Virus record (IMG/VR): IMGVR_UViG_3300023202_000383
Span: 124,001 to 188,000 of that record
Strand: one strand, 5' to 3'
DNA length: 64,000 nt
Shown one piece after another: positions 5,349 to 62,649 of the stretch. The notes under the pieces are model-generated. The model was not told the origin of the DNA and did no database searches. It saw only the letters and a list, made by a program, of their open reading frames with translations. The position numbers and the translations under genes are program-made. How positions within the stretch are numbered: the first letter of the stretch is position 1; each line of letters starts with the position of its first letter.

Positions 5349-5399
5349 ATTCGCACCTTAGATCAAATATAAGAAGGAGTATAGATCTGAGGTGCGAAT
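5349..5399 (+). promoter_or_regulatory. hairpin sequestering the SD of the endonuclease gene
   Basis: ATTCGCACCTTAGATC pairs with GATCTGAGGTGCGAAT (16 bp, one G-U), covering GAGGTG 5389-5394 just before ATG 5400. Confidence 0.6.
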
Positions 5400-8689: not shown

Positions 8690-8764
8690 TTAGCCCCGCT
8701 CGGCCTCGAACCGAGTTTTCCGGATTTAAAGCCCGGCGTGCTAACCAGGTACACTACGGGGCCA
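8690..8764 (-). tRNA. ochre-suppressor-type tRNA, anticodon TTA
   Basis: minus strand (T)GGCCCCG-TA-GTGT-ACCTGGTTA-GCAC-G-CCGGG-CTTTAAA-TCCGG-AAAA-CTCGG-TTCGAGG-CCGAG-CGGGGCT(A)-A. Confidence 0.85.
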
Positions 8765-39792: not shown

Positions 39793-40569
39793 ATGAAAGA
39801 CGGCTTCGATAGAGTGTATATTGACGATTCGTTTAAGAAATCGAATTGCATGAGAGTGTATGACATCGACATTGATGTCGAACGCCAAGTGGTTTTGTTT
39901 TATGAGCCGATATCGAAGTTCCCTAAGTCAGATGAACAATTTATGTTTAAACAGTATAATTTCTTTAAATATAGATACTTAAGATTTAAAGATGAACAAT
40001 ATTATCATAAAGCCAAAATCATAAAAGACAAGATTGGGAAACAATATATAAATCTTATCAGAAAAGAAGCACAGAGGTGCGCAGAACGGACCAGCAGGAC
40101 GGAATCTTATGATGATGCGTTCTCTGAAGCGAATATATTGTTCTCTAGATCAATAGATTTATTTAATTTTAATCTGGGATATAGATTTTCAACTTACATT
40201 GTTAATTCCATAAGAACTACGTTGCCTAGAAACTTCCTACGATTATTTAGGCACCATAGCAAGGAATGGAATTGTTCTAATGCTGTTGATAGTGACGATG
40301 CATTTATCAAGATCATAGACCCAAAATCTGGCAAGGACCTGGATGGGGCGTTAATAAGGTCCGACATTGATATGATATTTAATGGTAATGTTGAATTGTT
40401 AGATGATAGAGAACGAGAGATAATGCGTAGAAGGTATGGTTTCAATGGCGAAACAATATCTATGAGGGATCTCGCCAAAGAAACAGGGATTAGTCTAGCT
40501 AGCGTTAGCGGTGCAGAATCATCAGCTAAAAAGAAGCTGCGTGGATTCCGCGAAAAAGGCGGTATTTAA
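39793..40569 (+). CDS. sigma70-family sigma factor (regions 2 and 4)
   Basis: DAFSEANILFSRSIDLFNFNLGYRFSTY; LDDREREIMRRRYGF...SMRDLAKETGISLASV. Confidence 0.85.
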   Translation: MKDGFDRVYIDDSFKKSNCMRVYDIDIDVERQVVLFYEPISKFPKSDEQFMFKQYNFFKYRYLRFKDEQYYHKAKIIKDKIGKQYINLIRKEAQRCAERTSRTESYDDAFSEANILFSRSIDLFNFNLGYRFSTYIVNSIRTTLPRNFLRLFRHHSKEWNCSNAVDSDDAFIKIIDPKSGKDLDGALIRSDIDMIFNGNVELLDDREREIMRRRYGFNGETISMRDLAKETGISLASVSGAESSAKKKLRGFREKGGI

Positions 40570-45823: not shown

Positions 45824-47014
45824 ATGCCATTGGTCAAAGTACTACCAACTGCTAATTATAAAGAACTTCCAAAATTAAAGCAGTTCACAAAAGGTTCTGT
45901 TGGCATCGACCTATATTGCGCATCCGATGCCACAATCATGCCCAGGCAAAAAATAGATATTCCATGTGCTATAAAATTAGAATTGCCAAAAGGGTATTAT
46001 GCTAGGATTACCGGCAGATCTTCATCATTCATGCTTGGTATAGATATTAGAGAAGGCATAATCGACCAAGACTACAGGGGCGAGATTTATATTGGTGCCT
46101 ATAATTTTAGCGATGAGACGGTCACGATTAGCAGAGGTGACCGGCTAGCTCAAATGCTAATATCAAAATACGAGGATATAAGCATTGAGTACGTTGAATC
46201 AATAAATGATACTCAGAGGGGAGACGGGGGTTTTGGCAGCACAGATGTTACTGTTGGGGTAGAACATGCCAATTTTATCAATAAAGAATTCTTAGATGAA
46301 TTCTACATAAAAAAAGGGCTGTCTGCTGCCGAAATCGCCAAGAGATTCAACGTTGGCAAAACAACAGTACTGAGGAAAATGACAGAAAATGGTGTTGCCG
46401 CCTTAAATTCGTGGGAAAGACATCCACCAGAATTAGACGAATTACAGAGCATGCTAATTGCCGGGTCTATAATCGGCGATTTATCCATCAAGCATAGCGA
46501 GGCTTGGACGCATGCCAGGTGTGACTTCGCACACGGGCCTAATCAAATAGACTACTTAAGATATAAAAAAGACATAATGGCGAAATTCGTTACAATGGAC
46601 ATAAATTCTAAATATAACAAAGAATTCGATTCCGTCACTTTTTATTTCTCGACCATCACACATCCAATATTCACGCGACTGAGGGAGGAATATTATCCTA
46701 ATGGTGTGAAAGTGGTGACCGATAAGCTTTTGAATAGATTGAATCCTTTTTCACTATCTGTTTGGTATATGGACGATGGGTCTCTGCACATTAGTAATAG
46801 CAATAGTAGGTGGATATCTATGCATGTGGAGGGGTTTGACCCCGACTCACAAGTTAGAATCTTGTCGTGGCTTAATGATAACAGGTATGAGGCTAAATTC
46901 AGAAACGACGGGAAAGGCCATAGGTTTATCGTTCTCAATTCGATTGGTACAAGAAGGCTTATAGACACAGTAGAACCACACATCATCCCATGCATGCAAT
47001 ACAAAATTAGGTAA
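45824..47014 (+). CDS. dut: dUTPase fused to HTH and LAGLIDADG endonuclease
   Basis: GSVGIDL, GRSS, GIIDQDYRGEI, GDRLAQM, RGDGGFGST; then IAGSIIGDLSI and LSVWYMDDGS. Confidence 0.88.
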   Translation: MPLVKVLPTANYKELPKLKQFTKGSVGIDLYCASDATIMPRQKIDIPCAIKLELPKGYYARITGRSSSFMLGIDIREGIIDQDYRGEIYIGAYNFSDETVTISRGDRLAQMLISKYEDISIEYVESINDTQRGDGGFGSTDVTVGVEHANFINKEFLDEFYIKKGLSAAEIAKRFNVGKTTVLRKMTENGVAALNSWERHPPELDELQSMLIAGSIIGDLSIKHSEAWTHARCDFAHGPNQIDYLRYKKDIMAKFVTMDINSKYNKEFDSVTFYFSTITHPIFTRLREEYYPNGVKVVTDKLLNRLNPFSLSVWYMDDGSLHISNSNSRWISMHVEGFDPDSQVRILSWLNDNRYEAKFRNDGKGHRFIVLNSIGTRRLIDTVEPHIIPCMQYKIR

Positions 47015-48135: not shown

Positions 48136-48904
48136 GAAAATAGCTCATATAATAAATCCAGTTAATGTTAAACCGAATTCCAATCTCGGTATTGCTCAAC
48201 CAATAACATTTAAGACGATGGAAATCGCCAAAGATCATGTTAAAAATACTATCGATGTTAAACTATATTCTGCACAATACAAAGAAGATAGGGTGGCTGT
48301 GCCTGCCGGATTTATTATGACCCCGGACCTAAAAGAATCGGTGTTGGATTATGGTAAATTTAATATTCCTAGGAAGTTGCCTATTCTTGACGATATAATA
48401 AGAAGGTTACATCATTACTCCAACGAAGATTATTTGATATATACAAATGCTGACATAGCATTGATGCCAAATTTTTATCAAGAAGTTGCAAGATATATAG
48501 ACGATGGGCACGATGCCATCGAAATAACAAGAAGAACGATACCATCTACATATAGTGATGTGAGCCAGATAAAAAAGATGTTTAAATTAAAAGGGAAGAA
48601 GCATCCCGGCCACGATTGTTTTGTGTTCCACGCGTCTCTGTTTCAGAGAATGTTTGAATTGGCCAAAGTTTGTATAGGTGCACCTGCTGTCGGTAAGTGC
48701 ATGTTGTTGAACTTGCGGTGCTTCGCTAAGAAATTTATCAGGGTCACTGATCGTCATTTAACATTCCATATTGGTGACGATAAGATTTGGAATAAATATG
48801 CTGACTATAAAGAATACAATAGGTCAGAATATAGAAAAGCACACAATAGACTGCTAGTTAGGCATGCAATCCCAAATAGACTATTGGAATGGGCCGAGCT
48901 ATGA
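48134..48904 (+). CDS. glycosyltransferase-like protein
   Basis: YLIYTNADIAL DxD-like motif; HPGHDCFVF. Confidence 0.6.
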   Translation: MKIAHIINPVNVKPNSNLGIAQPITFKTMEIAKDHVKNTIDVKLYSAQYKEDRVAVPAGFIMTPDLKESVLDYGKFNIPRKLPILDDIIRRLHHYSNEDYLIYTNADIALMPNFYQEVARYIDDGHDAIEITRRTIPSTYSDVSQIKKMFKLKGKKHPGHDCFVFHASLFQRMFELAKVCIGAPAVGKCMLLNLRCFAKKFIRVTDRHLTFHIGDDKIWNKYADYKEYNRSEYRKAHNRLLVRHAIPNRLLEWAEL

Positions 48905-49945
48905 GCAATAGAATATGTAATCTGTGTGCTTTGAGGCTATTCTTGTCAGCACTTTTATGATTCTGTGTGGCTTGAATAATTTTTTAGCTTCATCGTACTG
49001 ATAATTGTTGACAAACACGATTGAGTTTTTATATTCTCCAGACACTTCAGCTATTTCTCTTATATCAGCTTTCCTGAATCTTCTTATGGCAATAAGAACG
49101 TCCTTGCTCCTCGATAGGCCCAACCCTATTGCGTTGTAAAATTCGTTGCCAAATCTATCTTCGTGTCTTAAGGGATAATATTTGTGTCCTTGGAGTGCAC
49201 ATGCTACGGCCTTTTCTCCAACGTTTGGAAACATGTCGTGTATCGTCCTGTTTTCACTATCTTCTAAGAGGTTAAAGATACCTTTGTATACTGCTGGAGA
49301 TACCCATTTCGGCCCACCATATTTATAAGTCTTTCCTATTATGTTGTTTATAGTAATGTCTTGCGTGGCACTATTTGCCATTTTAGATATTACTAAATAG
49401 CGTATTCTTTTATCATCCATTGTCCTTCTGAATGATTTATCATACTTGTTCTCGACTATATCTTGAAAATTGACGTACTTCTCGAATATTTGTCTTCCTG
49501 CTTTTCTCCTGTGGTAAGCATGGATATGATCGGACACCTTTATCATCGAAACATCATCTATTCGTTTCAATTCATTGTATGTTTCTGTGTCTGTATATAC
49601 TGGATCTGTATATCCAGTGACTCTCAGCAACAGTTTATGGATAAGTATTTCTTTATCCATATATGTTGAATTTTTTAGGTCGCTCTTTTTTACTAATGGA
49701 TACTTATTTGAATCTCGGTCGTGAAATTGATCATGTATTGGTATGTCGCGGCTTATTACGCCTTTTTCTCTGTCTATCGGCCTTATATATCTATATCGTT
49801 TTTTGGGCTCTAGAAAGCAATAATTTCTTTTCATCCCATTCTTGTATGTGACATATATTCTATCGGTGTCGAGACGTAATTTTTCAACCACGTCTTTCGC
49901 CTTTAATGCCTCGAATAACCTTCTAACCCATATCGGGGGTGACAT
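48899..49945 (-). CDS. hypothetical protein
   Basis: 348-aa ORF. Confidence 0.75.
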   Translation of the reverse strand: MSPPIWVRRLFEALKAKDVVEKLRLDTDRIYVTYKNGMKRNYCFLEPKKRYRYIRPIDREKGVISRDIPIHDQFHDRDSNKYPLVKKSDLKNSTYMDKEILIHKLLLRVTGYTDPVYTDTETYNELKRIDDVSMIKVSDHIHAYHRRKAGRQIFEKYVNFQDIVENKYDKSFRRTMDDKRIRYLVISKMANSATQDITINNIIGKTYKYGGPKWVSPAVYKGIFNLLEDSENRTIHDMFPNVGEKAVACALQGHKYYPLRHEDRFGNEFYNAIGLGLSRSKDVLIAIRRFRKADIREIAEVSGEYKNSIVFVNNYQYDEAKKLFKPHRIIKVLTRIASKHTDYIFYCS

Positions 49946-50514
49946 TGATAATACCTAATGCTAATTCCTGCCTTGGTTAACCATTGCCTTATTGTGCTGG
50001 CACTAACCCCAGCCAGCCTGGCACATTCTCTCATACCCATCATCTTATCGATATGATGCTCTTTAAGCCATTCTATATTATTTAGTGGGTGTTTTTGCTC
50101 ATTGTTGTCGATCGTGATGTTTTCTTTTGCTAACATCCTCTTTATTCTTTCTTTAGAACACTGAAAGATGTGAGCTAGTCTTCTAAGGCTATAACCTTTT
50201 TCATATAATTCACATACTCTATTGATATTTAGTGGCTCTATTTCGTCATTGTACTTAGGTTCTCTTGGTGGTTTGTATGGTTCTAGTCTCTCTATCTCCG
50301 CTAGGCAGTTGCCAAAGTCTATTATGACTACTTCGTCTACTCCCCATCTCTTCTTTGTATGTATAATTGACTGTTCTGATGTGCCGATCACGTGTGACAA
50401 TTCGGCATTAGTAAGGTCTTGATGCGACTTAAACCAAGATCTTAATGATTTTATGTCTTTTTTGCCGATCGATTCGAATTGCTCTTTGATCTTATCTAGG
50501 TCTTGATCTTTCAT
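49903..50514 (-). CDS. multi-HTH DNA-binding protein
   Basis: YSLRRLAHIFQCS; GMRECARLAGVSASTIRQWL. Confidence 0.7.
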   Translation of the reverse strand: MKDQDLDKIKEQFESIGKKDIKSLRSWFKSHQDLTNAELSHVIGTSEQSIIHTKKRWGVDEVVIIDFGNCLAEIERLEPYKPPREPKYNDEIEPLNINRVCELYEKGYSLRRLAHIFQCSKERIKRMLAKENITIDNNEQKHPLNNIEWLKEHHIDKMMGMRECARLAGVSASTIRQWLTKAGISIRYYQCHPRYGLEGYSRH

Positions 50515-53447
50515 GGCTGGTTAGGATCAGGGACCGGTTCCCACACAGCGAGTTTTACGCCGCGTCTTGGATCAAATGCTACCCATTTACGCCTAAACAA
50601 CACATTAAGCCTTGTGTTGTAATAGAAATTGTTTCTATGTGTTGTCGCATCTGGCTCGTGAGGCAGGTAATCTATGATAGCACCACCAAACATCTCGACA
50701 AATCTATGAGGATTGTCTCCAGGCTCTCTAGGTCTAACGGCTGTAGACGATGAGCTTGAACTGGACTCGCTCGATTCGGAGCTTTCGCTGCTTGCTGAAC
50801 TTGAAGCACTAGATCCGCTTGAATCGCTGGATCCACTGGATGAGCTTGATGGTATCGAGCTTTCGCTGCTTGCCGAACTTGAGCTGCTTGGGAATGTTCC
50901 GCAGGCAGCGAATTCGAATCCAGCAGTTTGGTTGTCGTTATCATCTACAGCCACGACTCTAAAGTCATATGTACTATTAGCGTCTAATCCAGTAACAGTA
51001 AATGTAGTTGCTGGTGGAGGCAATGTTCCGCCTCCAGAGTTCGACCCAGATAAAATCCAAAATGCATCACCAGTCATTCTGTAGTAGATATCATATCTTA
51101 CGACTTCTCCGTCTGGGTCAGTCGACGCATCCCATTCTATGTCTATGGTAGTAGCGGTGGAGTCGACGCATCTAATATTTCCTGGTGCAGTCGGCGGAAT
51201 ATCTCCTGGAGATGTAGAGCTGCTGGAACTACTACCGCTAGATGATGAGCTTTGGCTCGAATCTGAGCTTTGGCTGGAACTGCTGGAATCGGAGCTTGAG
51301 CTTTGGCTAGAACTGCTATCACTGCTCGAGCTACTAGAACCAGAACTGGAGCTAGAACTAATGCTGCTGGAGCTGCTAACACTACTAGAACTTGAGCTCC
51401 CGCTCGATGAGCTCGATGAGCTTTTGCTTGATCCTGAGCTTGAGCTGCTTCCGCTAGAACTGCTTCTACTGGAGCTTGATGGCAATGTAAATCCAGACCC
51501 AGCGAAGGCCAAGCCACCAACAACATCATCAATTACAGTGCCAGTTATTGGGTATGCAGCAGAGAATCCAGGACTAGAAACCCTTAGTACATCCCCACCG
51601 TTAGTGTCCAATATCCATAATCTACCGTTGGCGTCATACGCCATGGCAGTTGGGATAAGTGAACTATCTCCTGGATCGATCGAGTGCAATCCAGTATATG
51701 GGAATGGCACCCTTGTAAATCTTGTGTTCGCACTAGGAACGGGACCTATCGCAACAACTAAGTCCAAGTTGGATGGATCTATTGCACAAGCGCGGATACC
51801 AGCATTATTGGGGTTCGCTATACTGCCAAGAAATGTCCTAACGCCAGTAGCTATGTCTACTTCTGCGATTCTAACTGCTGGCGTTAATCCGCTCGATGGG
51901 ATGACTACAGAACCTGGAGTAAGAACATAGTAAACACCGGTCACATCACTTTTAGTGAAGCACCCGTCGTAATTTACCTGCAAAATGTTACTTGAAGTGT
52001 TGTCTACGGCACTAATATCAGCGAACTTTTGTCCGAGGTTTAGTGTTGTGGAAGCGCCGTGAACAACTATATCATCAGAAATGTCATCTCTGAACGCTGC
52101 ACCGCCGACTGCCGAAGAGAAAATTTCGGGAGTTCTTATCCCATCGACTCTTACTGTCAACCCAGCAGATGGACCTTCTGGCACTACCCTGTAAAGTCTT
52201 CTAGTTCCGACCATATATAAATCAGTCAGAGACTCCGGAGTGCTTGACGATGAAGAAGATGCTGTAACTGGTTGATCCAGGAATGGCGATCCGCTTATTA
52301 TAAAGACGCTACCATCGAATGTCGCTAAAGCTGTACCAAATTGGTCGCCAGCCCCAGCGCCAGACTCTTGGTCGAAATCCGATGTAGTAATTTGTTGCGA
52401 CTGAGAAAATGACCCACCGGACCTTGTAAATGTTACTATCGATCCGGAATTAGATCTATCGTTGTTGTTTGTTGTGGATGATGCACAAACAACCATCCTA
52501 TTGCTGTCCAATAAGGCGATTTTATTGCCGAGACCGTTGAATTGGCCTCCAACTATTCTTTGTGTTTGGGTCGCGGTGCCGTTGCTAGTGTTTAAACTGA
52601 ATACATATACAGCACCATTGGCATCGCCTAGTGGGTCCTCTTCTCCAGGCGCTCCAGTCACGATAGTACTGCCGCTTATGGCTACCGATGACCCAAATAG
52701 GACATCTTGGTCGCTTGGGTTACTGCCGGATGGCCTCAACACATCTGTTTCTATATAACTTGGCCCAGTAAGTTCATAGATGTGGAAAGCGCCATTAAAG
52801 TTTGCAGGCGACAATTCGTCTTGTCTGGCCCCGATTACAACAAAGTTACCATCAGTATCTATGTCGGAGCCGAAGAACCTGAAGTTGTTTGTGCCAGATG
52901 GCTGGTTGGGGCCATTTATGGCTTGGACAAAATTGAATCCCGATCCAGTGTAATCATATATAAAGACTCTACCGTGACCACTATTTGCGGCGATAGACGA
53001 TACAAATATTCTGTTTCCGTTTGCATGGATTATGTCTAAAACGTTGTCCGATATAGATATTGTAAGCTGTTCATTTAATGTATATGTACCGCCGCTTCTC
53101 TCGTACGCATAAACTTTCTTGAGAAAGCCACTTACGATAAACAATGTGGTGCCATTAAATGCGATTGCCTTTCCAAAGCTACCGAATGATTCCTCTGGCG
53201 ATTCGATAGTTTGAGCAAAGACTAATTCATCATTTATTATATCATATATATGTACCGCTCTGCCGACGCTCGATCCTGTAGCGGAGTTTAATTTAGCACC
53301 TATGGCGACTATGCTTCCATTTGAAGCAATGTCATCGCCAAAATTTTCTTGCCCAAAGACAACCGGCGGATTGACCTTATCGACTTCTACCAGTGATGAT
53401 AGGTCGTTACCTTTGAATAAATATGCTGCACCAACATCGAATGCCAT
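50511..53447 (-). CDS. large virion/surface protein: FG-GAP propeller, poly-Ser linkers, fibronectin type III
   Basis: FGSDIDTDGN, FGSSVAISG, QFGTALA; PTAPGNIRC...WDASTDPDG...YDFRVVAVD; Ser tracts. Confidence 0.85.
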   Translation of the reverse strand: MAFDVGAAYLFKGNDLSSLVEVDKVNPPVVFGQENFGDDIASNGSIVAIGAKLNSATGSSVGRAVHIYDIINDELVFAQTIESPEESFGSFGKAIAFNGTTLFIVSGFLKKVYAYERSGGTYTLNEQLTISISDNVLDIIHANGNRIFVSSIAANSGHGRVFIYDYTGSGFNFVQAINGPNQPSGTNNFRFFGSDIDTDGNFVVIGARQDELSPANFNGAFHIYELTGPSYIETDVLRPSGSNPSDQDVLFGSSVAISGSTIVTGAPGEEDPLGDANGAVYVFSLNTSNGTATQTQRIVGGQFNGLGNKIALLDSNRMVVCASSTTNNNDRSNSGSIVTFTRSGGSFSQSQQITTSDFDQESGAGAGDQFGTALATFDGSVFIISGSPFLDQPVTASSSSSSTPESLTDLYMVGTRRLYRVVPEGPSAGLTVRVDGIRTPEIFSSAVGGAAFRDDISDDIVVHGASTTLNLGQKFADISAVDNTSSNILQVNYDGCFTKSDVTGVYYVLTPGSVVIPSSGLTPAVRIAEVDIATGVRTFLGSIANPNNAGIRACAIDPSNLDLVVAIGPVPSANTRFTRVPFPYTGLHSIDPGDSSLIPTAMAYDANGRLWILDTNGGDVLRVSSPGFSAAYPITGTVIDDVVGGLAFAGSGFTLPSSSSRSSSSGSSSSSGSSKSSSSSSSGSSSSSSVSSSSSISSSSSSGSSSSSSDSSSSQSSSSDSSSSSQSSDSSQSSSSSGSSSSSSTSPGDIPPTAPGNIRCVDSTATTIDIEWDASTDPDGEVVRYDIYYRMTGDAFWILSGSNSGGGTLPPPATTFTVTGLDANSTYDFRVVAVDDNDNQTAGFEFAACGTFPSSSSSASSESSIPSSSSSGSSDSSGSSASSSASSESSESSESSSSSSSTAVRPREPGDNPHRFVEMFGGAIIDYLPHEPDATTHRNNFYYNTRLNVLFRRKWVAFDPRRGVKLAVWEPVPDPNQP
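50745..51478 (-). repeat. low-complexity Ser-codon tracts
   Basis: two poly-Ser runs flanking the FN3 domain. Confidence 0.85.
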
Positions 53448-53451
53448 CTGA

Positions 53452-54738
53452 TTATCCTAACAGGAAACCGAATTCCGTCTTGATTTCTTCTTCGATAGTT
53501 CTCAATTCAGGCCAATCAGATTCTGATATTACTTGCTCGCCATCGAATATGACTCGTACTGTTTCTTTCGATCTCCAATCGGCTTCTCCAAGCACCTCTG
53601 CGACATTGTCGCTAATGTCAATAATTGATTCTCTAGTCCTAATATTATATATCAAGATCAATTTATTGCCGTTAGAGAAATCAAAATAGCTACCTTTGTT
53701 CTCTAATTTATGATCGAAGAATTCATCTATTTGGTGGCATTTTATATATTCAGATGGATTACGCCATTGGACATCTTTTGTATTATCCAATTGCTCCACT
53801 ATCCTCTCTAATTTGTTTTCAAATGATTCTTCTACGTCTTCCGGCCCTTCCTTGTCCGTCTCTTCTCTACCTCTTAGCTTATCTACTAATCCTTTTATTC
53901 CGCCGCCTATTTTCTTGCCGGCTTGCTTGAGCTTGTCAACGATTTGTGATGCTATTTTCTTAACTTTTAGTTTGTCTGCTGCTGATTTAACGTCGCGTTT
54001 TATTCTGCTGACAATGTCATCTTTTTCTGGTTCTTCTGGTTCTTCTGGTTCTGGCTTTTCTTCCTTAGCTTCTGGTTCTGGTTTTTCTTCCGGTTCAGAT
54101 TCCGCTTCGGGTTCCTCTGGTTCGGGAACCGGCATCTTTGGCTCTTTTTCAGCTTCTGGCTCCGGTATCCTCGGGGCCTTTTCAGGTTCGTCAGGCATCT
54201 CCGGGGGCTCTTCTTGTGGCTTCGTTGGTGGTTCTGGCTCATCAGGCTCAGGTTCTGGTCGTTCCGGAAGTTCGTCTGGGTCTGGAGGAGTCACAGCTTT
54301 CGGCTCTGGCAACTTTCTTTCAGTATCTCTAGGATTGCTAATATAGGCTTGATTCCAGTGCCTATAGGTCCTTTTCATAAATTCTATGCCAAGCAGGTCT
54401 TTGGCTTTGCTATATCGCTCGCGGGGGCTAAGTTTGCTGCTCATTATTTCTGGCAGCGCTTCCTTAAATTGCTCTTTCGCTTGTTGCGGCAAAGACCTGA
54501 TCTTCTTTAGGTTCATTCCATAAAGAAGCTCGTTGTTGGTTCTAGGGTGCCTATATGCCCCGAATGGTATCACTAGTGGATTAGGGTCTGTTGTGTTTGG
54601 GCCAGCGTAATCCATCTGTAGAACCCTAAGCACACCCTCAATCAATAAGTCGATGTCATTGTGGTGGTCATATTCAGACAGCAACTTATCTAGTTGCGAT
54701 TCTGTGGCTGAATGTGTGATAAATTCGTGTAAATCCAT
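53452..54738 (-). CDS. hypothetical protein with a Pro/Glu-rich linker
   Basis: EPEPDEPEPP...EPEEPEEPEK. Confidence 0.8.
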   Translation of the reverse strand: MDLHEFITHSATESQLDKLLSEYDHHNDIDLLIEGVLRVLQMDYAGPNTTDPNPLVIPFGAYRHPRTNNELLYGMNLKKIRSLPQQAKEQFKEALPEIMSSKLSPRERYSKAKDLLGIEFMKRTYRHWNQAYISNPRDTERKLPEPKAVTPPDPDELPERPEPEPDEPEPPTKPQEEPPEMPDEPEKAPRIPEPEAEKEPKMPVPEPEEPEAESEPEEKPEPEAKEEKPEPEEPEEPEKDDIVSRIKRDVKSAADKLKVKKIASQIVDKLKQAGKKIGGGIKGLVDKLRGREETDKEGPEDVEESFENKLERIVEQLDNTKDVQWRNPSEYIKCHQIDEFFDHKLENKGSYFDFSNGNKLILIYNIRTRESIIDISDNVAEVLGEADWRSKETVRVIFDGEQVISESDWPELRTIEEEIKTEFGFLLG

Positions 54739-55233
54739 TTACTTGTAATCATCCAAATCTAATTCCTGGGAGACATGATCTCCGTGGTCTTTTACTTTAT
54801 CGTCATCGTTTTCTAGGTCTCTTTCTGATATTTGATTATCGTAATCACTGACCGTCGTGTCCACGACCTTACCTGGCCCTACTGCATTAGGGATTCTATA
54901 GGTCCATTTCTTTTTAATGGATTCTAATTCAGATTCTATATCTGGTTTCTTAACTACTTCTGGTTCCGGTTTTTCTTGGTCTGGGGGAGATACAGATCTA
55001 CCACTACCGCGTCGCTGTTTCATCTTTATCAGCTTTTGCGGTAGTGGTAGATCTTTAAATGGGATTCGAACGAGTCCCTTGTGAAACTTCTTATCTACAG
55101 TGGCAGGCAAATCCTGTTGAGGACTATTTCTTACTCGCCGGGAGTTCCTGCTTCTGTTTTTCAATGAATACACTCGCTTGCTTGACGGAATCGAAATAAC
55201 CTTCTGGATGGTCTTCCGCCCTACGCCACTCAA
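54739..55233 (-). CDS. hypothetical protein
   Basis: 164-aa ORF. Confidence 0.55.
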   Translation of the reverse strand: MSGVGRKTIQKVISIPSSKRVYSLKNRSRNSRRVRNSPQQDLPATVDKKFHKGLVRIPFKDLPLPQKLIKMKQRRGSGRSVSPPDQEKPEPEVVKKPDIESELESIKKKWTYRIPNAVGPGKVVDTTVSDYDNQISERDLENDDDKVKDHGDHVSQELDLDDYK

Positions 55234-57094
55234 ACTTCTCGCCGCTAGAGGTCTGGCCCGCCTTGGTTATTTCTTTTTGCCATTGCTGGACTTCATATTT
55301 GCCTTGTATCGTCTTTCCGTCATCGTCTTTTGCTGGCATTATCTTAAACGCGCGTCCGGTGTTACCACGCACATCCTTGTACTTCTTGCTGAGCTCTGGA
55401 TCTTTTTCAGATACATGTCTAAACTTCTTAATTGCGGACTTGATATCTTTGTTGACTTTAATTCCAGTCTTCCCCATGATCTTGCCAATCGCAGTAGGGC
55501 CATGCTTGACTCGCGGCCGCTTAATATATTCTTTGTACTGCTCGATCTGCGCATTTATTTGATCGGCGGCTGGATGATCAGCTGGTGCCTTAAGGCCGAA
55601 ATAAAGTCTAAGAGCCGTTTCCTGGCCTGGAGTTAGGTATGATTGGCCCATAAAATCTTGGCTAGATGCTTTATCGAAAAAGCCCTTGATGAGTGATGCT
55701 CTAAGGGCTTTTTCATCTCTAGTAGCCATTTGTGTTTCTGGTTTCGGAGGTTTTGGCTTTTCAGGCGATCTCTCATCTTTTACGGCAATCGTGCCTTTAC
55801 CGGCCCTTCCACCCTTGCCAAGCTGTTTTGCGACACCGCCACACATATCACAGCCAACTAGGAATTTGCGGCCCCCATATTCCATTTCTACGACGCCGCC
55901 GCCGCTTAGTTTCAATTCCACTCCCGGATTGATGGCTTTATCGTCCGCGCGTCGCAGATCTGCAATTCCAGCGTCTTTGAGTGATTTGCGGTTTTGTCTA
56001 GCGATCATTTTCCAGAGACTTTCATCACCAAATACGTCTCTGGCTATGCTTTTGAGAGTATCACCCTCTTTTGTTTCGTATGTTTCTTTAGATCCGCACT
56101 GTGGGCATATCTTCTTGGCCATAAATGCATCAACATGGCCCTGTATGTCATGCATCGACCCTTCGTCGTCGCCAACGGGAGCATCCATTGATTGGATTAC
56201 ATCGCCGACTTTTTGGCCTTTCGTTCTGGCTGTTCTAGTATCGACCTGAGAACGACCTTGCTTGTATGCACGGCGGTCGGCTCGTCTGCTCATTGCATTG
56301 AAGACGTGACCAGAGAATGGCTGAATACCCTTGTCGGTCTTCAGTGCCTGCATGATAGCAAACGTGGCTTCTTGGAATGCATCTCCAAGATCCATGCTGC
56401 GTTGGCGGCGTACGATTTTAGAAATCGGGCCTTTAACGCCGGAAGCTTCCCCACCCTTGAACTTCAGTCCGCCAAGGGCTTCAACGATTTCCGCTATAGT
56501 CCATGGTTGTCTACCGATTCTGTCGAGAGCCAGGGGAAGCTTGACATTCTTCAGATGTCTATAGTCCGGGAAGTCGGGATCATTGCGATACCCCTCTGGG
56601 TTGCTGTCCGACACTTCTCCTACATGCGTCTTTTCTTTTCCAGTTGCAGTTCTGTACTTCTCGTTGTCGGCTCTGAATTTCTGGATAGCAGCGAGGATTT
56701 CTTCGTCGAAGATATTGCCTTGCTCGTCTGCATTGCCAGCGAGGTCATATTCCTTGCCATCTACAGTTATCTGGTCTGGAAGACCACTGATACTCTTTTT
56801 GGATTTGTCTTCATCTCCTTCATCGGCCTTTGTGATTATTTTTATAGCATAGTCATCGTCATCCAGGCTGCTGCCGAGACCGCCTTCTTCCTTAGACATC
56901 TCAATGTATTCTGCGGCACCCTCGCGGTCCGTGAATTTACTGGAAACGGGCTCCCCTGATTTGTCTACAACAACATACTCATAGTTATCCTCGTCGAAAA
57001 ACACATCCTCAAGCAGGATCGGTGCTTCGACAAGATACAATACACCATGACTACGTATGAACATAACGAACCTCCTATTAGTAGATTTGCCCAA
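55124..57094 (-). CDS. sigma70-like protein with an inserted Zn-ribbon/LysM module
   Basis: region 2 DLGDAFQEATFAIMQAL...FSGHV; region 3 SMDAPVGDD; LysM YETKEGDTLKSIA...LWKMIARQN; region 4 LTPGQETALRLYFGL...AIGKIMG. Confidence 0.65.
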   Translation of the reverse strand: MGKSTNRRFVMFIRSHGVLYLVEAPILLEDVFFDEDNYEYVVVDKSGEPVSSKFTDREGAAEYIEMSKEEGGLGSSLDDDDYAIKIITKADEGDEDKSKKSISGLPDQITVDGKEYDLAGNADEQGNIFDEEILAAIQKFRADNEKYRTATGKEKTHVGEVSDSNPEGYRNDPDFPDYRHLKNVKLPLALDRIGRQPWTIAEIVEALGGLKFKGGEASGVKGPISKIVRRQRSMDLGDAFQEATFAIMQALKTDKGIQPFSGHVFNAMSRRADRRAYKQGRSQVDTRTARTKGQKVGDVIQSMDAPVGDDEGSMHDIQGHVDAFMAKKICPQCGSKETYETKEGDTLKSIARDVFGDESLWKMIARQNRKSLKDAGIADLRRADDKAINPGVELKLSGGGVVEMEYGGRKFLVGCDMCGGVAKQLGKGGRAGKGTIAVKDERSPEKPKPPKPETQMATRDEKALRASLIKGFFDKASSQDFMGQSYLTPGQETALRLYFGLKAPADHPAADQINAQIEQYKEYIKRPRVKHGPTAIGKIMGKTGIKVNKDIKSAIKKFRHVSEKDPELSKKYKDVRGNTGRAFKIMPAKDDDGKTIQGKYEVQQWQKEITKAGQTSSGEKFEWRRAEDHPEGYFDSVKQASVFIEKQKQELPASKK

Positions 57095-57103
57095 CTGGTT
57101 CTT

Positions 57104-58084
57104 TTATCGCCCTCTGATATATTCTTCGAACAATTCGCAGGCGTTATCCTTGAATTGTTCGAGATCATTCTTGGTAGCAAGCCCGTTGCTCAATGCAAGA
57201 TCGAACTCGTCGTCGAGCCTGCAGCCGAATTGTATGGGATCGTCTGTGTTTAGAGTGATCCTACAACCGGCTTCAATCATTCTTTTTATAGGATGGTCCC
57301 CTATCGATTTTACGACCCCAGTGTAGAGATTGCTGTGGAGGGCCAAATCAAAGGTGATCCCCTGGTTGTTGCACATGTCAAGAATCTCTTTAGAGGCTTG
57401 GATTCCGTGTGCTATTCGATCGACGCCACTACATTTTACCACATCTTCAACGTGCTTGCAAGTATCTGGCAGCTCACCCACATGTGCACGAACGTGCTTA
57501 CCGGCTTTGCGCCAGTTTTCGATGAGTGGTTTGTAAAAGTCGATATCAAAGGCTGCCTCATCCCCAACGAGGTCCATTCCAACAAAATGACGCGCTATCT
57601 CATCATCAAAAATTATATCGGCAAATCGCTTTTGATCATCTCTAGAGGACTCGTACTTTAAAGACAATAACAGGCCGACATTTACGTTATGTCTTTTAGA
57701 CGACTCTTCGAGGTTGCGTGTTATTATCTCAGCTGCTTTATGGACCGACCAGTTGTGGTGCTTAGTAAACTTGTTTAGTGACAAGCTTATTTCAGAGAAA
57801 TCAATATTATCCTCTCTGAGATCTTTACAGACCTGGTCGACCATTATTCTTATGGCCCACTCATCCCACGTAATCTCATCCAGAATTTGGAATTTAGTTA
57901 AGAATGTCTTGAAATCATTTTTGTCGCCACGAGAGAATCTCATGGCTTTGTTTACTTCTCGAAATGATTTAGCTATATGGTATGATTTAGATTTATTTAT
58001 TATTGACCATACAGTTTCAGGGGATATAGACCCACCTAGCTAAAGGTGGCGATGAATGTCGCACCTTGGACGTTCAATCGCCAC
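57104..58084 (-). CDS. add: adenosine/adenine deaminase with an in-frame TAG at codon 15 (CTT-TAG-CTA)
   Basis: AGGAGG SD and GTG 58084; DIHRHL*LGGSISPET; RAHVGE, RIAHG, LNTDDP; the ORF track shows only the 57104..57943 part. Confidence 0.85.
58037..58045 (-). promoter_or_regulatory. candidate stop-hop / readthrough site CTT-TAG-CTA
   Basis: Leu-amber-Leu inside the HxHLGGS motif; removing 6 nt restores the consensus. Confidence 0.7.
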
Positions 58085-58091
58085 AGTCCTC

Positions 58092-58415
58092 CTATCCTGA
58101 TATTAGATCCCTAATAGAGATATTTAAAGAGTTGAGCATTCTGTCCGTGATTCTATCCATCAAGTCATTTTTTCTATCATACGAATGAGTCAATAGAACT
58201 ATTTCTTTTACTGTTATATCATCGAGACTTTTAGACAAGTTATATTTCTTGTCGATAAGACCCGACTTTCTAAGAACCGCAACCACTTTCGCTATATACG
58301 ATTCTGATCCATCTATATTTTCTGATATGCCAGCAATGCTTTGAGCGCCGTCATCGACAGCTACTAATATATCGATAGCATACTCAATCCACTTTTCGTC
58401 TCTAAGCATTGTCAA
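58092..58415 (-). CDS. Rrf2-like winged-helix regulator
   Basis: YAIDILVAV...SIAGISE...SESYIAKVVAVLRKSGLI. Confidence 0.7.
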   Translation of the reverse strand: MTMLRDEKWIEYAIDILVAVDDGAQSIAGISENIDGSESYIAKVVAVLRKSGLIDKKYNLSKSLDDITVKEIVLLTHSYDRKNDLMDRITDRMLNSLNISIRDLISG

Positions 58416-58708
58416 TCCTTTTCGGATATCGTGTCAGTTTCTAGAGGCGTCGGTGGTGCTTGAAACACTTCTGGATTATAAGCCTCTAAAGACTTCTTAA
58501 AAACTTCATATGTTTGCCGATCTTCATTATGCGATGGTATTAGCATACAGGTATCACCATTATCGGCCCATATTGTGTAGCTGCCAACTGGTATCTTTAT
58601 AGCGTCAGATACCACAGCATTGATGTTAAGTGTCATTCCTTCCTCTATGACGAGCTCATTTTTGTCTAAGCTCTCTAGAGCCGCATGCAATTTATTGTCG
58701 AATTTCAT
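58412..58708 (-). CDS. hypothetical protein
   Basis: 98-aa ORF. Confidence 0.7.
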   Translation of the reverse strand: MKFDNKLHAALESLDKNELVIEEGMTLNINAVVSDAIKIPVGSYTIWADNGDTCMLIPSHNEDRQTYEVFKKSLEAYNPEVFQAPPTPLETDTISEKD

Positions 58709-58782
58709 ATTTCACCTATAGTATTTTTATTTCCATACGCAAGATAAGGCAAATCTATTAAAGAGATCTGGAGACTATATAT

Positions 58783-61700
58783 ATGCCGATTTTTAACAAT
58801 TCTTTGATCCCGTCAGTTAGTGCTGGCAGAATCATTGATAGATTTCTGTCTGATGAGACTCTGAATGTACGCTGGCTCACTCCGGAAGATCCTGCGCACT
58901 TTAGTGCTTTGAATAGGCCGTTGTCTGATCTTGCATTGAGGCAATTGGTAATTGCGAAAGTTCTCGACACCATTACATTAGATTTGAAGTTCGTTGAGAA
59001 GTTTCCGTTTGTGTGCCAGCCTGTTGTGGAAGGTGGTTCATTTACTTTAGATCTACCTCTGAAACTAATTAGAGATCTTCATGTGGCCTTCCCTGCTAAG
59101 TACGCGAATCCAAGACTAGCTAGGATAGATCGTTTAAATGGCTCGAATGATTCTGGGACTGATCCGAAATATACTGGAACGCTAAGATTTATATTTATTG
59201 CTGATTCTGGAGATGGTAGCGATGTTGCGTTATTTTATGCTGATTATTTAATCGATAGTAGTGATGATTTACAATTTGTTAGTGTAGAAGCCGCATCTGA
59301 CCAATCCAAAGTTCCTGGCTTAACTCCGCTCCCAAGCGAGGATTCTGGTTTCATTACCGGTGTTATGATATTTAGGACCGGTGACCAAGATTTATCAGAT
59401 ATAACTACATTTTATGATTTTGTTGCTCCAAGCGACGTCAATGGTATAGCCAATTATCCGATATTAGATGCACAAAGCTGTGAGATAAATATCGGAACTG
59501 ACGTTTTAGATAGCGGGAGCGGCTTACTAACATCTAGTGCTTATAATCAGATAATATCTGGTATTAATATAGAACCGGCAGCGGAAAGTGGAATAACTGT
59601 AGAATTTGATGAGGATCAAAATGCCTTTATAATTGGGCTAGATCAATCTCAGATAGATCATACTCAAATTGCAAATATTGGCGTCAACACTCACGACCAA
59701 ATTGATGCCCATATAATTAACACCAATAATCCCCACCAAGTCACGCCTACGCAGCTTGGCAATGGCTCTCCGATATGGAATACCAATAAAATTCAGAGCA
59801 GAAACGTCAGTAACCAAGCGCCAGAAGATGGCCAAGCTCTGATATTCGACCAAGCAACTAACCAATATATACCATCGGATGTGGCAGCTAGCGGCGGTGG
59901 CAGCGGAAATGTTGTTGAGAGAACTGTATTTATCGACCCAGTAACGGTTGATGAATCCGACTCATCCGACACTAAAGCGTTTACGACATTTGATGCATCT
60001 GACTTCGTCGACAATGATGCTGTCGCTGTCGTGCTGCAGGCCAAAGGTGATGGTGTTGCTGGCGTCGCTGGTAGTCTTTCATGGGTTGGCTTCACTGCCC
60101 ATCAATCCGAGCCGCTGGGCAGGGGTGCTGGCAGTCTTAATATACCTATATATCCTGGCGTTGTTGAAGTTTCCAGATCTGATGGTGTTCAGACTTATGC
60201 ATATGATGTGTCTGGCTTTGTTGGTAGCGGTTTCAACCAGAGCCAATTGACATTTATTCAGATCCATGCATATATAGATATCGGAACTGCTGGTGCGAGT
60301 TCATCTGACTTCATAAGAATACAAGCTAGGTGGCCAGATGGCTCATTTAGGGATTTAGCAGTAGGAAGAGCCGATGGTGGTGATGATTCTAGGCACGGCA
60401 AAACATTGTTGGTTCCTATTGCTCCTGGCCAAACGCAATTTGAAATAAGGATTGAGCAAACTTGGGACGACGACGGAGGGTGGGTATACCAGATTCTTGG
60501 TGCTGTCCAACAAGGAGGTGCTCAAGGGGGCAGCAGTGCCGGTCAGATAACCGTCAGAAAAGAAGATGGTGAACCAGAATACAATCTAATTATAGCTAGT
60601 GACGGTTCTGAGCAGGCGATCTTCCCGCTAGCCAGTGACAAGAGCTTTGAATATGCAGTACCAGCTGGGTTTGCTGACGGCTATAAGATAGAGCTTATAG
60701 GCTATATCAGAAGAAGTCTAGATGGTAGAAGTATACCGAGAGATCTTGCTGGCAGGACTTTCTTGCCAGCTGATTCGTCATCTACTAGATTCCATAGAGT
60801 AGGTGGATTTGGTACTGGTTCGTCAAGCCATTTCAAGAATATAGATAGGCTTGAAAAGAACCCCAATATGAACAATAGGTTCGACTATTGGGCTAAAAGG
60901 GTTAATCTCAACACCGGATTGACTAACGAAGCCGTGCCAGAGAATGCCACGCATGTCATGTTAAGGGTGTTGGCTGATTACAATTTACTAGGGTCTGATG
61001 AAGTTACGCTCCATATTGGAAAATTTGACAATAGCTTGCCAGAATCATATACTGGGTCTACATTCAATGATGCCAATTTAATAGGCACTACGCAAGCTAC
61101 TTCATTTATCAACACGCCTGGTACAGACAAAGCGCTGGCGTTGTCTAGAACAGCCACTACTAACTTGGATCAACAGGGATCGACAGTTGTGGTCCCAATA
61201 GAGCCAGAAGATACCAACCACATAACGTGGCTTCTTGGGCTAAGAGACATAGCAGATAACACATCGCTAGATTTTACGATTTATGTGGAAGGATATTATC
61301 TAAGAGAAAGCCAGACAATAGTCGATGATAGTGAGAGCACTGATACTGGAGGGGATACTGGTCCTGGCGGAATCTTGTTAGCCGACCTACTACAGGATCC
61401 GAATTTCTATGACCACCTTAGTGGAAATCTTGGGAATCAGAATTCCGGGATGACCACTAAGGGCGAGGCGTTGCCGTTTACTGAGGTGCCGCAGTCTGAG
61501 CAGACTATAGTTATAGATCCAGATAATGCAAGGCGTGTTGCGATACTCAGAGTAGACATTAGATATAGTGCTACCGGGAATGGCGATCCACTAACGTTTA
61601 GGCTAAGATCAACAACGGCTGGCGATACCTACACGAGGTGGGTAACGGATCTTTATCGCGCTGGCAATGGCGACAGACCTCACGCTGGTTTTTCGTCAAC

Positions 61701-62649
61701 AGTTTTGATACCTCTCGATGATTCTGGTGCTGTTAGAGTAACAGCATTCGCACAAGACATAAACGCTGCGTTCTACAGACTCCAGCTTGAAGGTTTCGCT
61801 TCCAATGAAGGGGGCGGAGGTGATGGGGGCGGGGGTGCAACACCCCCACCGGCAATTGTTTCTGGTTTAATAACTGGCTCAATAGGTGGGCTTCTTATGC
61901 GGCAAAGCACGGGAGATCCAGACAATGATATTGTCATAACTTCCGGGTCGTGTGTCGATGCGAATGAGACTATTTTGATGAGGGTAACTGGCACGCTCAT
62001 CAAGAGATTAGACGCACCTTGGAGCGAAGGCACGAATGATGGTGGTTTGGCTAGTTCGCTATCTGTTCAACCAAATAGAACTTATCATGTTTTCTTGATT
62101 GCCAAGCCTGATGGGACAGTGGATGGTGGATTTGATGAGGATGTGTCGGCCTCCGCATTATTAGCGGATGGTTCACCATCTGGGTACACAACTTATCGTA
62201 GGGTTGGGTCTATAGAGACCGATGGCAATAGCAGAATCAGAGATTTTGTCTCGAATGAGACTCCTGGTGGCGGCTTAGAAATCCTATGGTCCCAAGACAG
62301 GACCAAACCGTTGTCAACAGTTGGTTCGGGGGGATTTTTTGAACTCAATGTACCGTTTGGCGTAAGTTATGAGGCTATAATAAATGCCAGACTTAGCGGG
62401 CAAGGCGGCAACGGAGGAGAATTGCGGATAACAACTCCATCTGGTCCTATTCATAATTCCGATGTCCCAGCTATAGAAATTGGTGGTTCTTTTATAAGAG
62501 ATAGTGACCAAACAGATAATTTTATTTTGTCATCTCAATTGAGGGTAAGAACCAACGCAGCCAAACAAGTTGTAGTGTCTATCAGTGGCGATGACGATGA
62601 ATCAGAAGTGACAACAATCGGATTTATAGACTCCAGAAGACAAATTTAA
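58783..62649 (+). CDS. large virion structural protein (tail fibre-like)
   Basis: 1288 aa; H..N..NPH.VT..Q.G fibre motif; C-terminal KRLDAPWSEGTNDGGL...TYHVFLI. Confidence 0.75.
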   Translation: MPIFNNSLIPSVSAGRIIDRFLSDETLNVRWLTPEDPAHFSALNRPLSDLALRQLVIAKVLDTITLDLKFVEKFPFVCQPVVEGGSFTLDLPLKLIRDLHVAFPAKYANPRLARIDRLNGSNDSGTDPKYTGTLRFIFIADSGDGSDVALFYADYLIDSSDDLQFVSVEAASDQSKVPGLTPLPSEDSGFITGVMIFRTGDQDLSDITTFYDFVAPSDVNGIANYPILDAQSCEINIGTDVLDSGSGLLTSSAYNQIISGINIEPAAESGITVEFDEDQNAFIIGLDQSQIDHTQIANIGVNTHDQIDAHIINTNNPHQVTPTQLGNGSPIWNTNKIQSRNVSNQAPEDGQALIFDQATNQYIPSDVAASGGGSGNVVERTVFIDPVTVDESDSSDTKAFTTFDASDFVDNDAVAVVLQAKGDGVAGVAGSLSWVGFTAHQSEPLGRGAGSLNIPIYPGVVEVSRSDGVQTYAYDVSGFVGSGFNQSQLTFIQIHAYIDIGTAGASSSDFIRIQARWPDGSFRDLAVGRADGGDDSRHGKTLLVPIAPGQTQFEIRIEQTWDDDGGWVYQILGAVQQGGAQGGSSAGQITVRKEDGEPEYNLIIASDGSEQAIFPLASDKSFEYAVPAGFADGYKIELIGYIRRSLDGRSIPRDLAGRTFLPADSSSTRFHRVGGFGTGSSSHFKNIDRLEKNPNMNNRFDYWAKRVNLNTGLTNEAVPENATHVMLRVLADYNLLGSDEVTLHIGKFDNSLPESYTGSTFNDANLIGTTQATSFINTPGTDKALALSRTATTNLDQQGSTVVVPIEPEDTNHITWLLGLRDIADNTSLDFTIYVEGYYLRESQTIVDDSESTDTGGDTGPGGILLADLLQDPNFYDHLSGNLGNQNSGMTTKGEALPFTEVPQSEQTIVIDPDNARRVAILRVDIRYSATGNGDPLTFRLRSTTAGDTYTRWVTDLYRAGNGDRPHAGFSSTVLIPLDDSGAVRVTAFAQDINAAFYRLQLEGFASNEGGGGDGGGGATPPPAIVSGLITGSIGGLLMRQSTGDPDNDIVITSGSCVDANETILMRVTGTLIKRLDAPWSEGTNDGGLASSLSVQPNRTYHVFLIAKPDGTVDGGFDEDVSASALLADGSPSGYTTYRRVGSIETDGNSRIRDFVSNETPGGGLEILWSQDRTKPLSTVGSGGFFELNVPFGVSYEAIINARLSGQGGNGGELRITTPSGPIHNSDVPAIEIGGSFIRDSDQTDNFILSSQLRVRTNAAKQVVVSISGDDDESEVTTIGFIDSRRQI

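Follow-up and report, generated by a model that had tools for sequence, protein, structure and literature searches.

What is a LysM domain doing inside a protein built like a sigma-70 factor? The question arises from a minus-strand gene in the 64,000-nucleotide stretch of DNA analysed here (the window), which comprises bases 124001-188000 of the 256.5-kb virus record IMGVR_UViG_3300023202_000383, itself rated 70 % complete. The original prediction, made from the sequence alone, took the open reading frame (ORF) at 55124-57094 for a sigma-70-like protein with a LysM domain inserted between regions 3 and 4, and suggested a ligand-responsive or virion-packaged transcription factor or a repurposed sigma scaffold. 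Our analysis bears out the overall architecture, in which a CxxC-flanked LysM domain sits between a region 3.2 segment and region 4, and we propose that the protein is probably a cytoplasmic, phage-made alternative sigma factor for the host RNA polymerase.

The frame at 55124-57094 is a real ORF in the ORF list, but its start moves: the likely start codon is the ATG at 57064-57062, not the TTG at 57094, and an AGGAGG sequence lies 6 nt upstream at 57076-57071. The same 646-residue protein, P0002, to which all residue numbers refer, is called on five public contigs, the longest of 332 kb. Its layout is as follows.

55124..57064, minus strand: whole gene including the stop codon, 646 residues (ORF list, start context, public gene calls)
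57071..57076, minus strand: ribosome-binding site AGGAGG (sequence read directly)
56645..57064, minus strand: acidic N-terminal region, residues 1-140 (charge count, alignment, phmmer ranges)
56249..56587, minus strand: sigma region 1.2-like segment and sigma-2 domain (regions 2.1-2.4), residues 160-272 (predicted local distance difference test score, pLDDT, of 88-97; VIA-align; profile)
56117..56248, minus strand: disordered linker with region 3.2-like motif, residues 273-316 (profile match; model disorder at 271-303)
56141-56191, minus strand: SMDAPVGDDEGSMHDIQ, the region 3.2-like motif, residues 292-308 (SigA profile alignment)
55835..56113, minus strand: predicted zinc ribbon, residues 318-410 (cysteine count, family alignment, profile matches)
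56096-56107, minus strand: first knuckle, CPQC, residues 320-323
55907..56086, minus strand: LysM domain between the knuckles, residues 327-386 (phmmer, NCBIfam, pLDDT, Kbp superposition)
55841-55852, minus strand: second knuckle, CDMC, residues 405-408
55724..55840, minus strand: Gly/Lys/Pro-rich linker, predicted disordered, residues 409-447 (pLDDT 31-44, composition)
55397..55723, minus strand: sigma region 4 (4.1 and the 4.2 helix-turn-helix), residues 448-556 (sub-profile A5, model, VIA-align)
55127..55396, minus strand: C-terminal extension, helical with a small module, residues 557-646 (model secondary structure)

Searched alone, P0002 reveals little of this. No Pfam family reaches threshold over the whole protein, which gives just two sub-threshold zinc-ribbon matches, and single-sequence searches of PHROGs, NCBIfam and the PDB return the LysM-like stretch together with a very weak hint of an extracytoplasmic function (ECF) sigma factor. 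The hint covers residues 218-299 at E 0.12. Kbp is the sole match of a phmmer search of the PDB with P0002 alone. An exhaustive phmmer search of 1.84 billion representative proteins gave 164 matches, 150 of them listed, which form two groups. Most are LysM-repeat proteins that align solely with residues ~324-403, while about 15 are true relatives that align over residues ~140-336 or 466-565 (P0003, P0010, P0011, P0013-15, P0017, P0019, P0023, P0026, P0071, P0083, P0101 and P0115); an additional relative, L011, comes from a viral contig. The alignment of the family including P0002 (A1) shows a conserved series that begins with LR..QL..Y, V.D.NP.G and PL.LD..G..PWT..EI.EA, continues through DDA.S.G..A.L.AL..DKG.APF......I.R.I.R and S.D.P.G, and ends with CPxCxGxG ... 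CxxCxGxG and L.PRQ.E..LL..GLEG.

It is this family that connects P0002 to the sigma factors. A profile of 15 metagenomic relatives from which P0002 was left out (A7) aligns with P0002 at an hhalign probability of 99.9 % (E 1.3e-31; 278 columns) and shows the LysM domain as an insertion between the two knuckles. Against the PDB, A7 reaches SigA at E 9.6e-6 and matches chains that include SigA, RpoD and FliA; of its 13 matches at E <= 0.01, sigma factors make up 11 and anti-TRAP zinc modules two. The A1 profile matches SigA (7ckq_F) at E 1.3e-7 in collinear stretches corresponding to region 2, region 3.2 and region 4. The region 2 stretch covers SigA 145-216, that is, regions 2.1-2.4, and SMDAPVGDDEGSMHDIQ aligns with the SigA region 3.2 segment in the same collinear match. 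A sub-profile for region 4 (A5) matches region 4 of RpoD and SigA at E 1.5e-3 to 7e-3. Individual members add to this, as five of the 15 match phrog_351, annotated 'RNA polymerase sigma factor' (best 6e-9), and P0003 scores 23.5 bits against the 24.1-bit cut-off of Pfam Sigma70_r4 (E 3.9e-5). The signal emerges only with the broader alignment: when the profile was restricted to the eight closest members of the main subfamily (A2), no sigma factor in the PDB was reached.

The structural models agree with the profiles. In the AlphaFold model of the whole protein, which is confident at residues 150-270 and 330-390, residues 163-271 superpose under VIA-align on the sigma-2 domains of AlgU, sigmaE, sigma70, sigmaS and sigmaB at Z 6.0-6.5 overall. 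AlgU (6in7_B) gives Z 6.5 with a root-mean-square deviation (rmsd) of 3.4 Å over 86 residues, sigma70 (6ca0_F) Z 6.3 and sigmaE (1or7_B) Z 6.2, and the sigma70 superpositions extend over region 1.2. A separate model of residues 440-566 (pLDDT 87.7) was compared by VIA-align with 48,161 representative chains without a pre-filter. Sigma region 4 domains account for almost all of the best 27, at Z 8.0-5.1, led by 4xln_F (Z 8.0, rmsd 3.5 Å over 85), 7vpd_F (7.5) and 6dv9_F (7.0). The Z scores for both domains are middling, and the tool cautions that values < 8 may arise from helical arrangements that many proteins share. Within region 4 there is a ~29-residue helical insertion (493-521), also present in P0011. 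Because Foldseek returned only E-values > 1e-3 for both models, we give weight to the composition of the hit lists and to the Z scores from VIA-align. The case for a sigma factor stands because independent sequence and fold evidence agree for each domain.

Profile and structure searches thus uphold both the sigma regions and the LysM fold that had been proposed. The region 2-like segment is confirmed by the SigA 2.1-2.4 profile match and the sigma-2 fold matches, and the region 4-like segment by the A5 profile and the fold search. The claim of a region 3-like segment survives in part. The region 3.2 linker motif is there, but only ~20 disordered residues separate it from the end of the region 2.4 helix, and for that reason there is no sigma-3 domain.

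The family is hard to see by other means. Pfam scans of its members gave nothing above threshold. Neither tblastn with P0002 and P0019 against 50,697 GenBank phage records nor megablast with the 12-kb neighbourhood produced a match, and a word-index protein search with P0002 alone or with the A1 alignment found only P0002 itself. Viral and metagenome contigs queried with P0002 alone yielded no close relative; the sub-alignment A2 as the query found two loci. On balance we regard P0002 as a very divergent member of a previously unannotated sigma-70 lineage in uncultivated jumbo phages. Such a lineage would be invisible to Pfam, PHROGs and NCBIfam at their thresholds even though sigma factors are among the best-studied bacterial proteins. 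Outside the sigma domains, the N-terminus is acidic, as originally described, with a net charge of -20 over its 140 residues; this region, which includes a small alpha/beta module, is shared only with P0003, P0015 and P0048, and a fold search with the N-terminal 145 residues gave no usable match. Feature scores of 0.82 for the whole protein count as leads only. The C-terminal extension (557-646) has no family match in Pfam and PHROG scans.

The only cysteines of P0002 are C320, C323, C405 and C408. The original prediction had pointed out the CPQC and CDMC motifs, and these four residues align with nearly invariant cysteines of the family. A beta hairpin (391-404) precedes the second knuckle, the knuckles themselves being modelled at low confidence, and the zinc module of the family matches the CXXCXGXG repeats of anti-TRAP and DnaJ at E 0.0016-0.006, which are the profile's sole PDB matches outside the sigma factors. 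The distance from knuckle to knuckle varies widely. It is 18 residues in four members, the minimal form, 23-32 residues in five, and 46-65 residues in three, which have four CxxC motifs and are DnaJ-like; P0002, with its LysM insert, spans 89 residues and P0026, with an unrelated helical insert, 100. Conservation of the CxxC motifs across spans of 18-100 residues indicates that the ribbon is a family trait whose loop accepts insertions. From these alignments, the four-cysteine module is a predicted zinc ribbon that defines the family, and its inter-knuckle loop a putative insertion hot spot. The alternative that the CxxC pairs form a frame brought in with the LysM domain was rejected, the ribbon being family-wide and the LysM domain a lineage-specific loop insertion. 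The insert of P0026 (residues 180-279) consists of ~90 residues in two helical repeats within the same loop. P0071 has an additional, C-terminal zinc ribbon (residues 498-529).

The LysM domain itself is supported by phmmer, by NCBIfam LysM (E 6.6e-4) and by its fold, as the original prediction of a LysM-like unit had anticipated. Residues 327-386, which read TYETKEGDTLKSIARDVFGDESLWKMIARQN ... AINPGVELKL, are matched by 135 of the 151 proteins compared, 150 of which are the listed phmmer matches. All eight matching proteins that were scanned contain Pfam LysM, with the domain at the matched coordinates where these were compared. The segment is 32-44 % identical to many LysM domains of the 'GD...W..I...N' type, and also matches phrog_8272, phrog_7145 and phrog_975. 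Pfam LysM (PF01476) scores 16.3 bits against a cut-off of 20.9 and aligns only at profile positions 1-27, because an extra loop of ~10 residues (366-376) is inserted between helix 2 and strand 2. This loop forms one wall of the usual LysM sugar groove. The model (pLDDT 93-97) has the order strand-helix-helix-strand, and its closest structure is Kbp (8zex; Z 8.2, rmsd 1.9 Å over 56, 32 % identity), the potassium-binding protein or potassium sensor. The LysM domains of YkuD, NlpC/P60 and CERK1 proteins superpose at Z 6.0-6.5, and LysM subunits of phage and contractile-injection baseplates superpose as well.

Kbp of E. coli is cytoplasmic and its LysM domain has a structural role. The original statement that LysM is normally extracytoplasmic therefore does not hold strictly, as Kbp is cytoplasmic and baseplate LysM domains are structural parts inside particles. 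Because the nearest solved relatives work inside cells or particles, a docking or regulatory role is likelier than wall binding. The LysM domain of P0002 is most likely a surface docking or regulatory module on the holoenzyme, for a protein partner or a small ligand; we do not think that it binds the cell wall. Among the matches listed, P0002 alone combines the family core with LysM (P0001 being a TTG-start extension of the same protein), and the domain is absent from the other 15 family members examined. It appears to be a LysM of the Kbp or baseplate type inserted in this one phage. No other LysM was found in the 256-kb record, and a donor within the genome was accordingly rejected, P0002 being the record's sole LysM match.

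If P0002 is a sigma factor, the polymerase it serves is likely to be that of the host. The phage has a gp23-type (T4-type) capsid gene (E 4.9e-79), whose nearest capsid relative, at 39.5 % identity, belongs to an uncultured 595-kb phage, and searches of the 256-kb record, 70 % complete, revealed neither beta nor beta-prime domains of RNA polymerase. These features fit a group of jumbo phages reported to rely on the host polymerase and their own sigma factors (PMC7824862). Sigma linkers run through the active-site cleft and leave via the RNA exit channel (PMC6372665). We propose that the sigma-2 domain of P0002 would bind the beta-prime clamp helices of the host RNA polymerase, that the 3.2-like linker would enter the active-site cleft, and that the following ~11 residues would lie in the RNA exit channel. 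The ribbon and LysM module (~90 residues), being too bulky for the channel, would sit at its mouth beside the beta flap and the beta-prime zinc-binding and dock elements. Finally, the flexible linker of ~40 residues may give sigma-4 enough reach to contact the flap tip together with a -35-like element of the promoter.

The first of these steps was examined by modelling a complex, a check suggested in the original prediction. The test paired P0002 145-275 with E. coli beta-prime 230-345, a stand-in for the host's subunit, and returned 'weak support', with a score of 0.43 against 0.02 for the best control; the runs agree in at least 46 % of contacts, and partner pLDDT is at least 43. The mark is reached by 58 of 80 solved complexes and by two of 110 mismatched pairs, although only seven of the 80 solved complexes reach it with scores <= 0.60, as do both of the passing mismatches.

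Besides the middling Z scores and the stand-in subunit, several points weigh against a functional sigma factor. All Pfam and NCBIfam sigma models are below cut-off on P0002, TIGR02937 scoring 12 bits against 42.9. The aromatic cluster and tryptophan pair of regions 2.3 and 2.4 serve -10 recognition and melting. In the profile alignment, the SigA sequence FSTYATWWIRQ corresponds to FSGHVFNAMSR in P0002, the tryptophan pair being replaced by Asn-Ala, and the family consensus likewise lacks tryptophan at these positions, where the residues are variable. Melting of the promoter may accordingly be atypical or absent. No recognition helix of region 4.2 can be made out in the largest subfamily, nor in most relatives; the canonical region 4 helix-turn-helix is kept in P0002, P0003 and P0011. 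No promoter could be tied to P0002, and the motif CAAANATA, described below, could be assigned to neither of the phage's sigma factors. Finally, the record is 70 % complete, and the portion it lacks could encode a phage polymerase.

These observations feed an alternative that we consider unlikely, although it survives best of the three, namely that P0002 is a repurposed scaffold which binds polymerase through sigma-2 and the exit-channel module and does not initiate transcription. It might block the host sigma factor, or act on pausing or termination in the manner of Q-type factors. The missing tryptophan pair and the unrecognisable 4.2 helix of most relatives would fit such a role, as would the conventional sigma factor that the phage already encodes; three of the 15 members also weakly match phrog_127, 'anti-termination protein Q-like' (best E 0.0015), though these matches are probably due to the CxxC pairs alone. 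The canonical, fold-supported helix-turn-helix of P0002, P0003 and P0011 argues against loss of initiation, and the 3.2-like motif is unusually near that of RpoD, pointing to a working initiation linker.

Slightly less likely still is a ligand-gated sigma factor, in which the LysM domain binds a cytoplasmic molecule containing N-acetylglucosamine (GlcNAc), or another small ligand, and so shifts the module at the RNA exit channel, making activity follow the state of the host cell wall. Candidate ligands would be UDP-GlcNAc, UDP-N-acetylmuramic acid (UDP-MurNAc)-peptide and recycled anhydro-muropeptides. The domain is well folded (pLDDT 93-97), retains the GDTL...N...PG core motifs, and is 38 % identical to the T. 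thermophilus LysM solved with an N-acetylglucosamine oligomer (4uz3_C; Z 6.0, 2.0 Å over 47). The ~10-residue insertion falls in the loop that walls the sugar groove, however, the other 15 family members examined do without LysM, and in the nearest solved relative, the potassium sensor Kbp, LysM is structural. In its favour, the domain lies beside a linker whose displacement controls promoter escape (PMC6372665), and sigma factors with a built-in sensor exist, such as the CorE-like ECF44 proteins with a CxC between sigma-2 and sigma-4 (PMC6851896). The most specific version, a self-sensing sigma factor whose ribbon docks at the mouth of the host exit channel, as a bacterial-virus counterpart of the TFB/TFIIB ribbon, while LysM binds a cytoplasmic wall precursor or recycled muropeptide and thereby switches phage transcription, is a long shot; if true, the condition of the host wall could set the timing of late genes or of lysis.

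That P0002 is packed into the capsid and injected, with LysM holding it at peptidoglycan during entry or assembly, is highly unlikely: LysM is common in phage tail and baseplate proteins (PHROG matches, baseplate structures) and both ends of P0002 carry long acidic extensions not known from any cellular sigma factor, but relatives with the same extensions do without LysM, no export signal was found (P0002 has no transmembrane or signal segment, its maximum hydropathy being 1.15), and the genes conserved around it are deaminase-like, winged helix-turn-helix (wHTH), helix-turn-helix (HTH) and nucleotide-metabolism genes, not head or tail genes.

The context argument for packaging had come from the statement that the gene lies among structural genes, which the neighbourhood does not support. 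The gene is within a long minus-strand run from 58708 down to 48899, in the order 98-residue gene, Rrf2-like wHTH gene, adenosine-deaminase-like gene, sigma-like gene and small ORF, continuing with a Pro/Glu-rich 428-residue protein, a 978-residue FG-GAP/fn3 protein, an HTH protein and a 348-residue protein. Genes for ribonucleotide reductase, GroEL, dUTPase and an epimerase lie farther away. The neighbourhood is one of nucleotide metabolism and regulation, with the 978-residue FG-GAP/fn3 protein as the sole possible structural component. ECF sigma factors usually have a partner anti-sigma factor; among the families reported by Pfam and PHROG for ten nearby proteins none was of the anti-sigma type, no dedicated anti-sigma search having been made.

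A second sigma factor is encoded elsewhere in the window, where the original prediction had placed a separate, ordinary sigma gene at 39793; it is confirmed by Pfam, NCBIfam and PHROG matches.

39793..40569, plus strand: conventional sigma-70-family gene, 258 residues (Pfam Sigma70_r2/r4; TIGR02937 E 9.5e-15; phrog_351 E 2.8e-23)
57104..58084, minus strand: adenosine-deaminase-like gene, upstream of the sigma-like gene and in the same frame, with an in-frame TAG at 58042-58040

P0002 has no BLASTP similarity to the product of 39793-40569, and hhalign of A1 against the same sequence was insignificant, though it aligned at region 4.1. A motif, (T)CAAANATA, often preceded by AATTAT, occurs in 82 copies in the whole record, 45 of them in the 9.4 % of the DNA that is non-coding. 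The non-coding copies are oriented toward a gene that starts 12-45 nt further on, the distance to the ATG often being exactly 12 nt, and we consider the motif probably a phage promoter class. Within the window it occurs at 5363, 20090, 24069, 31101, 37195, 39665, 43235 and 47117; no copy was found upstream of the zinc-ribbon sigma operon, and a scan for sigma-70-type promoters and terminators around the gene did no better than on shuffled sequence.

A block at 48899-62649 is conserved in related jumbo phages (loci L007, L010 and L011). It contains genes for a 1288-residue protein, the 98-residue product, the Rrf2-like wHTH protein, the deaminase-like protein, the zinc-ribbon sigma factor, the 428-residue Pro/Glu-rich protein, a 203-residue HTH protein and the 348-residue protein. 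The 428-residue protein (53452-54738, minus strand) has a Pro/Glu/Lys low-complexity centre (EPEPDEPEPP...), and homologues stand beside the sigma-like gene in L010 and L011. The deaminase-like gene adjoins the sigma-like gene in every related locus examined; as the whole block is syntenic in related phages, this adjacency may only reflect shared ancestry, and functional coupling between the two genes was dropped as an explanation.

The deaminase-like gene is broken. It begins at GTG 58084, behind an AGGAGG, and reads VAIERPRCDIHRHL, then TAG, then LGGSISPETVW. Relatives read HRH[LFM]GGSISP, the palindrome TAGCTA amounting to six extra bases inside the HxH metal-ligand motif, and the remaining ORF encodes 279 residues from ATG 57943, without the HxH. 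The interruption is identical in the 332-kb public contig. The deaminase-like and sigma ORFs share a frame, with one TAA (57104-57106) and 13 sense codons between them, and the downstream 164-residue and 428-residue ORFs are split by a single TAA (54739-54741). Genome-wide, in-frame ORF pairs split by one stop number 14 with TAA, 14 with TGA and 12 with TAG, a spread over stop types from which the same-frame junctions may be chance. Stop-codon recoding was dropped for the same reason and because all three stops are used (TAA 123, TGA 121, TAG 68; coding density 90.6 % under code 11). A tRNA with the suppressor-type anticodon UUA (8691-8763, minus strand; Rfam 55.9 bits) belongs to a cluster of 26 tRNA genes (5258-30108), within which it is encoded on the opposite strand. 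Elsewhere in the window are a 396-residue ORF (45824-47014, plus strand) that joins a dUTPase (22-170) to a LAGLIDADG-type homing endonuclease region (208-395), a GroEL-like chaperonin gene (41615-43234, plus strand; E 3e-165), and a ribonucleotide reductase gene (34340-37150, minus strand; 936 residues) whose profile match falls in two stretches.

Several known systems resemble P0002 in part. The group 4 (ECF) sigma factors, such as M. tuberculosis SigL (6dv9), E. coli sigmaE and P. aeruginosa AlgU, have the same plan of sigma-2 and sigma-4 without sigma-3. They are the best structural matches for both domains, and the same linker path is expected (PMC6372665). Unlike them, P0002 scores only 12 of the 42.9 bits required by TIGR02937 and combines a region 1.2-like lead-in with an RpoD-like 3.2 motif; in place of their short unstructured linker it has one with the ribbon and LysM (~90 residues) and ~40 disordered residues, and it also has long terminal extensions. 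The best sequence-profile matches are instead the primary and group 3 factors SigA/RpoD and FliA, with region 2, the 3.2 motif and region 4 in collinear order, from which P0002 differs in lacking sigma-3, region 1.1 and the 2.3 tryptophan pair and in its 29-residue insertion in region 4.

The nearest known case of cysteines in the linker between sigma-2 and sigma-4 is that of the metal-responsive CorE-like ECF44 factors, where they are needed for activity and form a built-in metal site (PMC6851896). P0002 differs in having two CxxC(xGxG) knuckles, no CxC and no cysteine beyond residue 408, and no sequence similarity to CorE-like factors was detected. A functional analogy can also be drawn with the TFB/TFIIB ribbon and B-reader, in which a zinc ribbon adjoins the segment lodged in the cleft and exit channel during initiation (PMC6372665). 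The two are not homologous and their elements follow a different order along the chain, and the placement of P0002 on the polymerase is one that we infer. The knuckles of the family (CPxCxGxG ... CxxCxGxG) resemble those of the DnaJ central domain and anti-TRAP (2bx9_A), the members with four CxxC motifs resembling the two-zinc DnaJ unit; unlike these, the family module sits inside a sigma linker, and its Pfam scores are all below threshold. If the lineage is read correctly, a sigma linker can accommodate folded insertions, 18 to 100 residues long, immediately behind the segment that would fill the exit channel. The family would then offer a natural insertion series in which to study the influence of bulk at the channel mouth on promoter escape and on sigma release, as well as a compact starting point for engineering sigma factors that carry an inserted sensor domain.

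The LysM domains of Kbp (YgaU) and of baseplates work inside cells or particles and not at the wall surface, in the case of the baseplates according to the entry titles. The domain of P0002 differs from both in sitting in the zinc-ribbon loop of a transcription factor and in its longer loop between helix 2 and strand 2. A keyword search of the literature, a limited check, found no description of a sigma factor with a linker zinc ribbon or LysM, and P0002 can be described as a sigma-70 relative whose zinc ribbon, so far unannotated, runs through the whole family and whose LysM insertion is unique. Should the LysM domain bind a ligand, it would be a new viral way to read host cell-wall metabolism; should it not, it would be another LysM fold used as a plain protein module.

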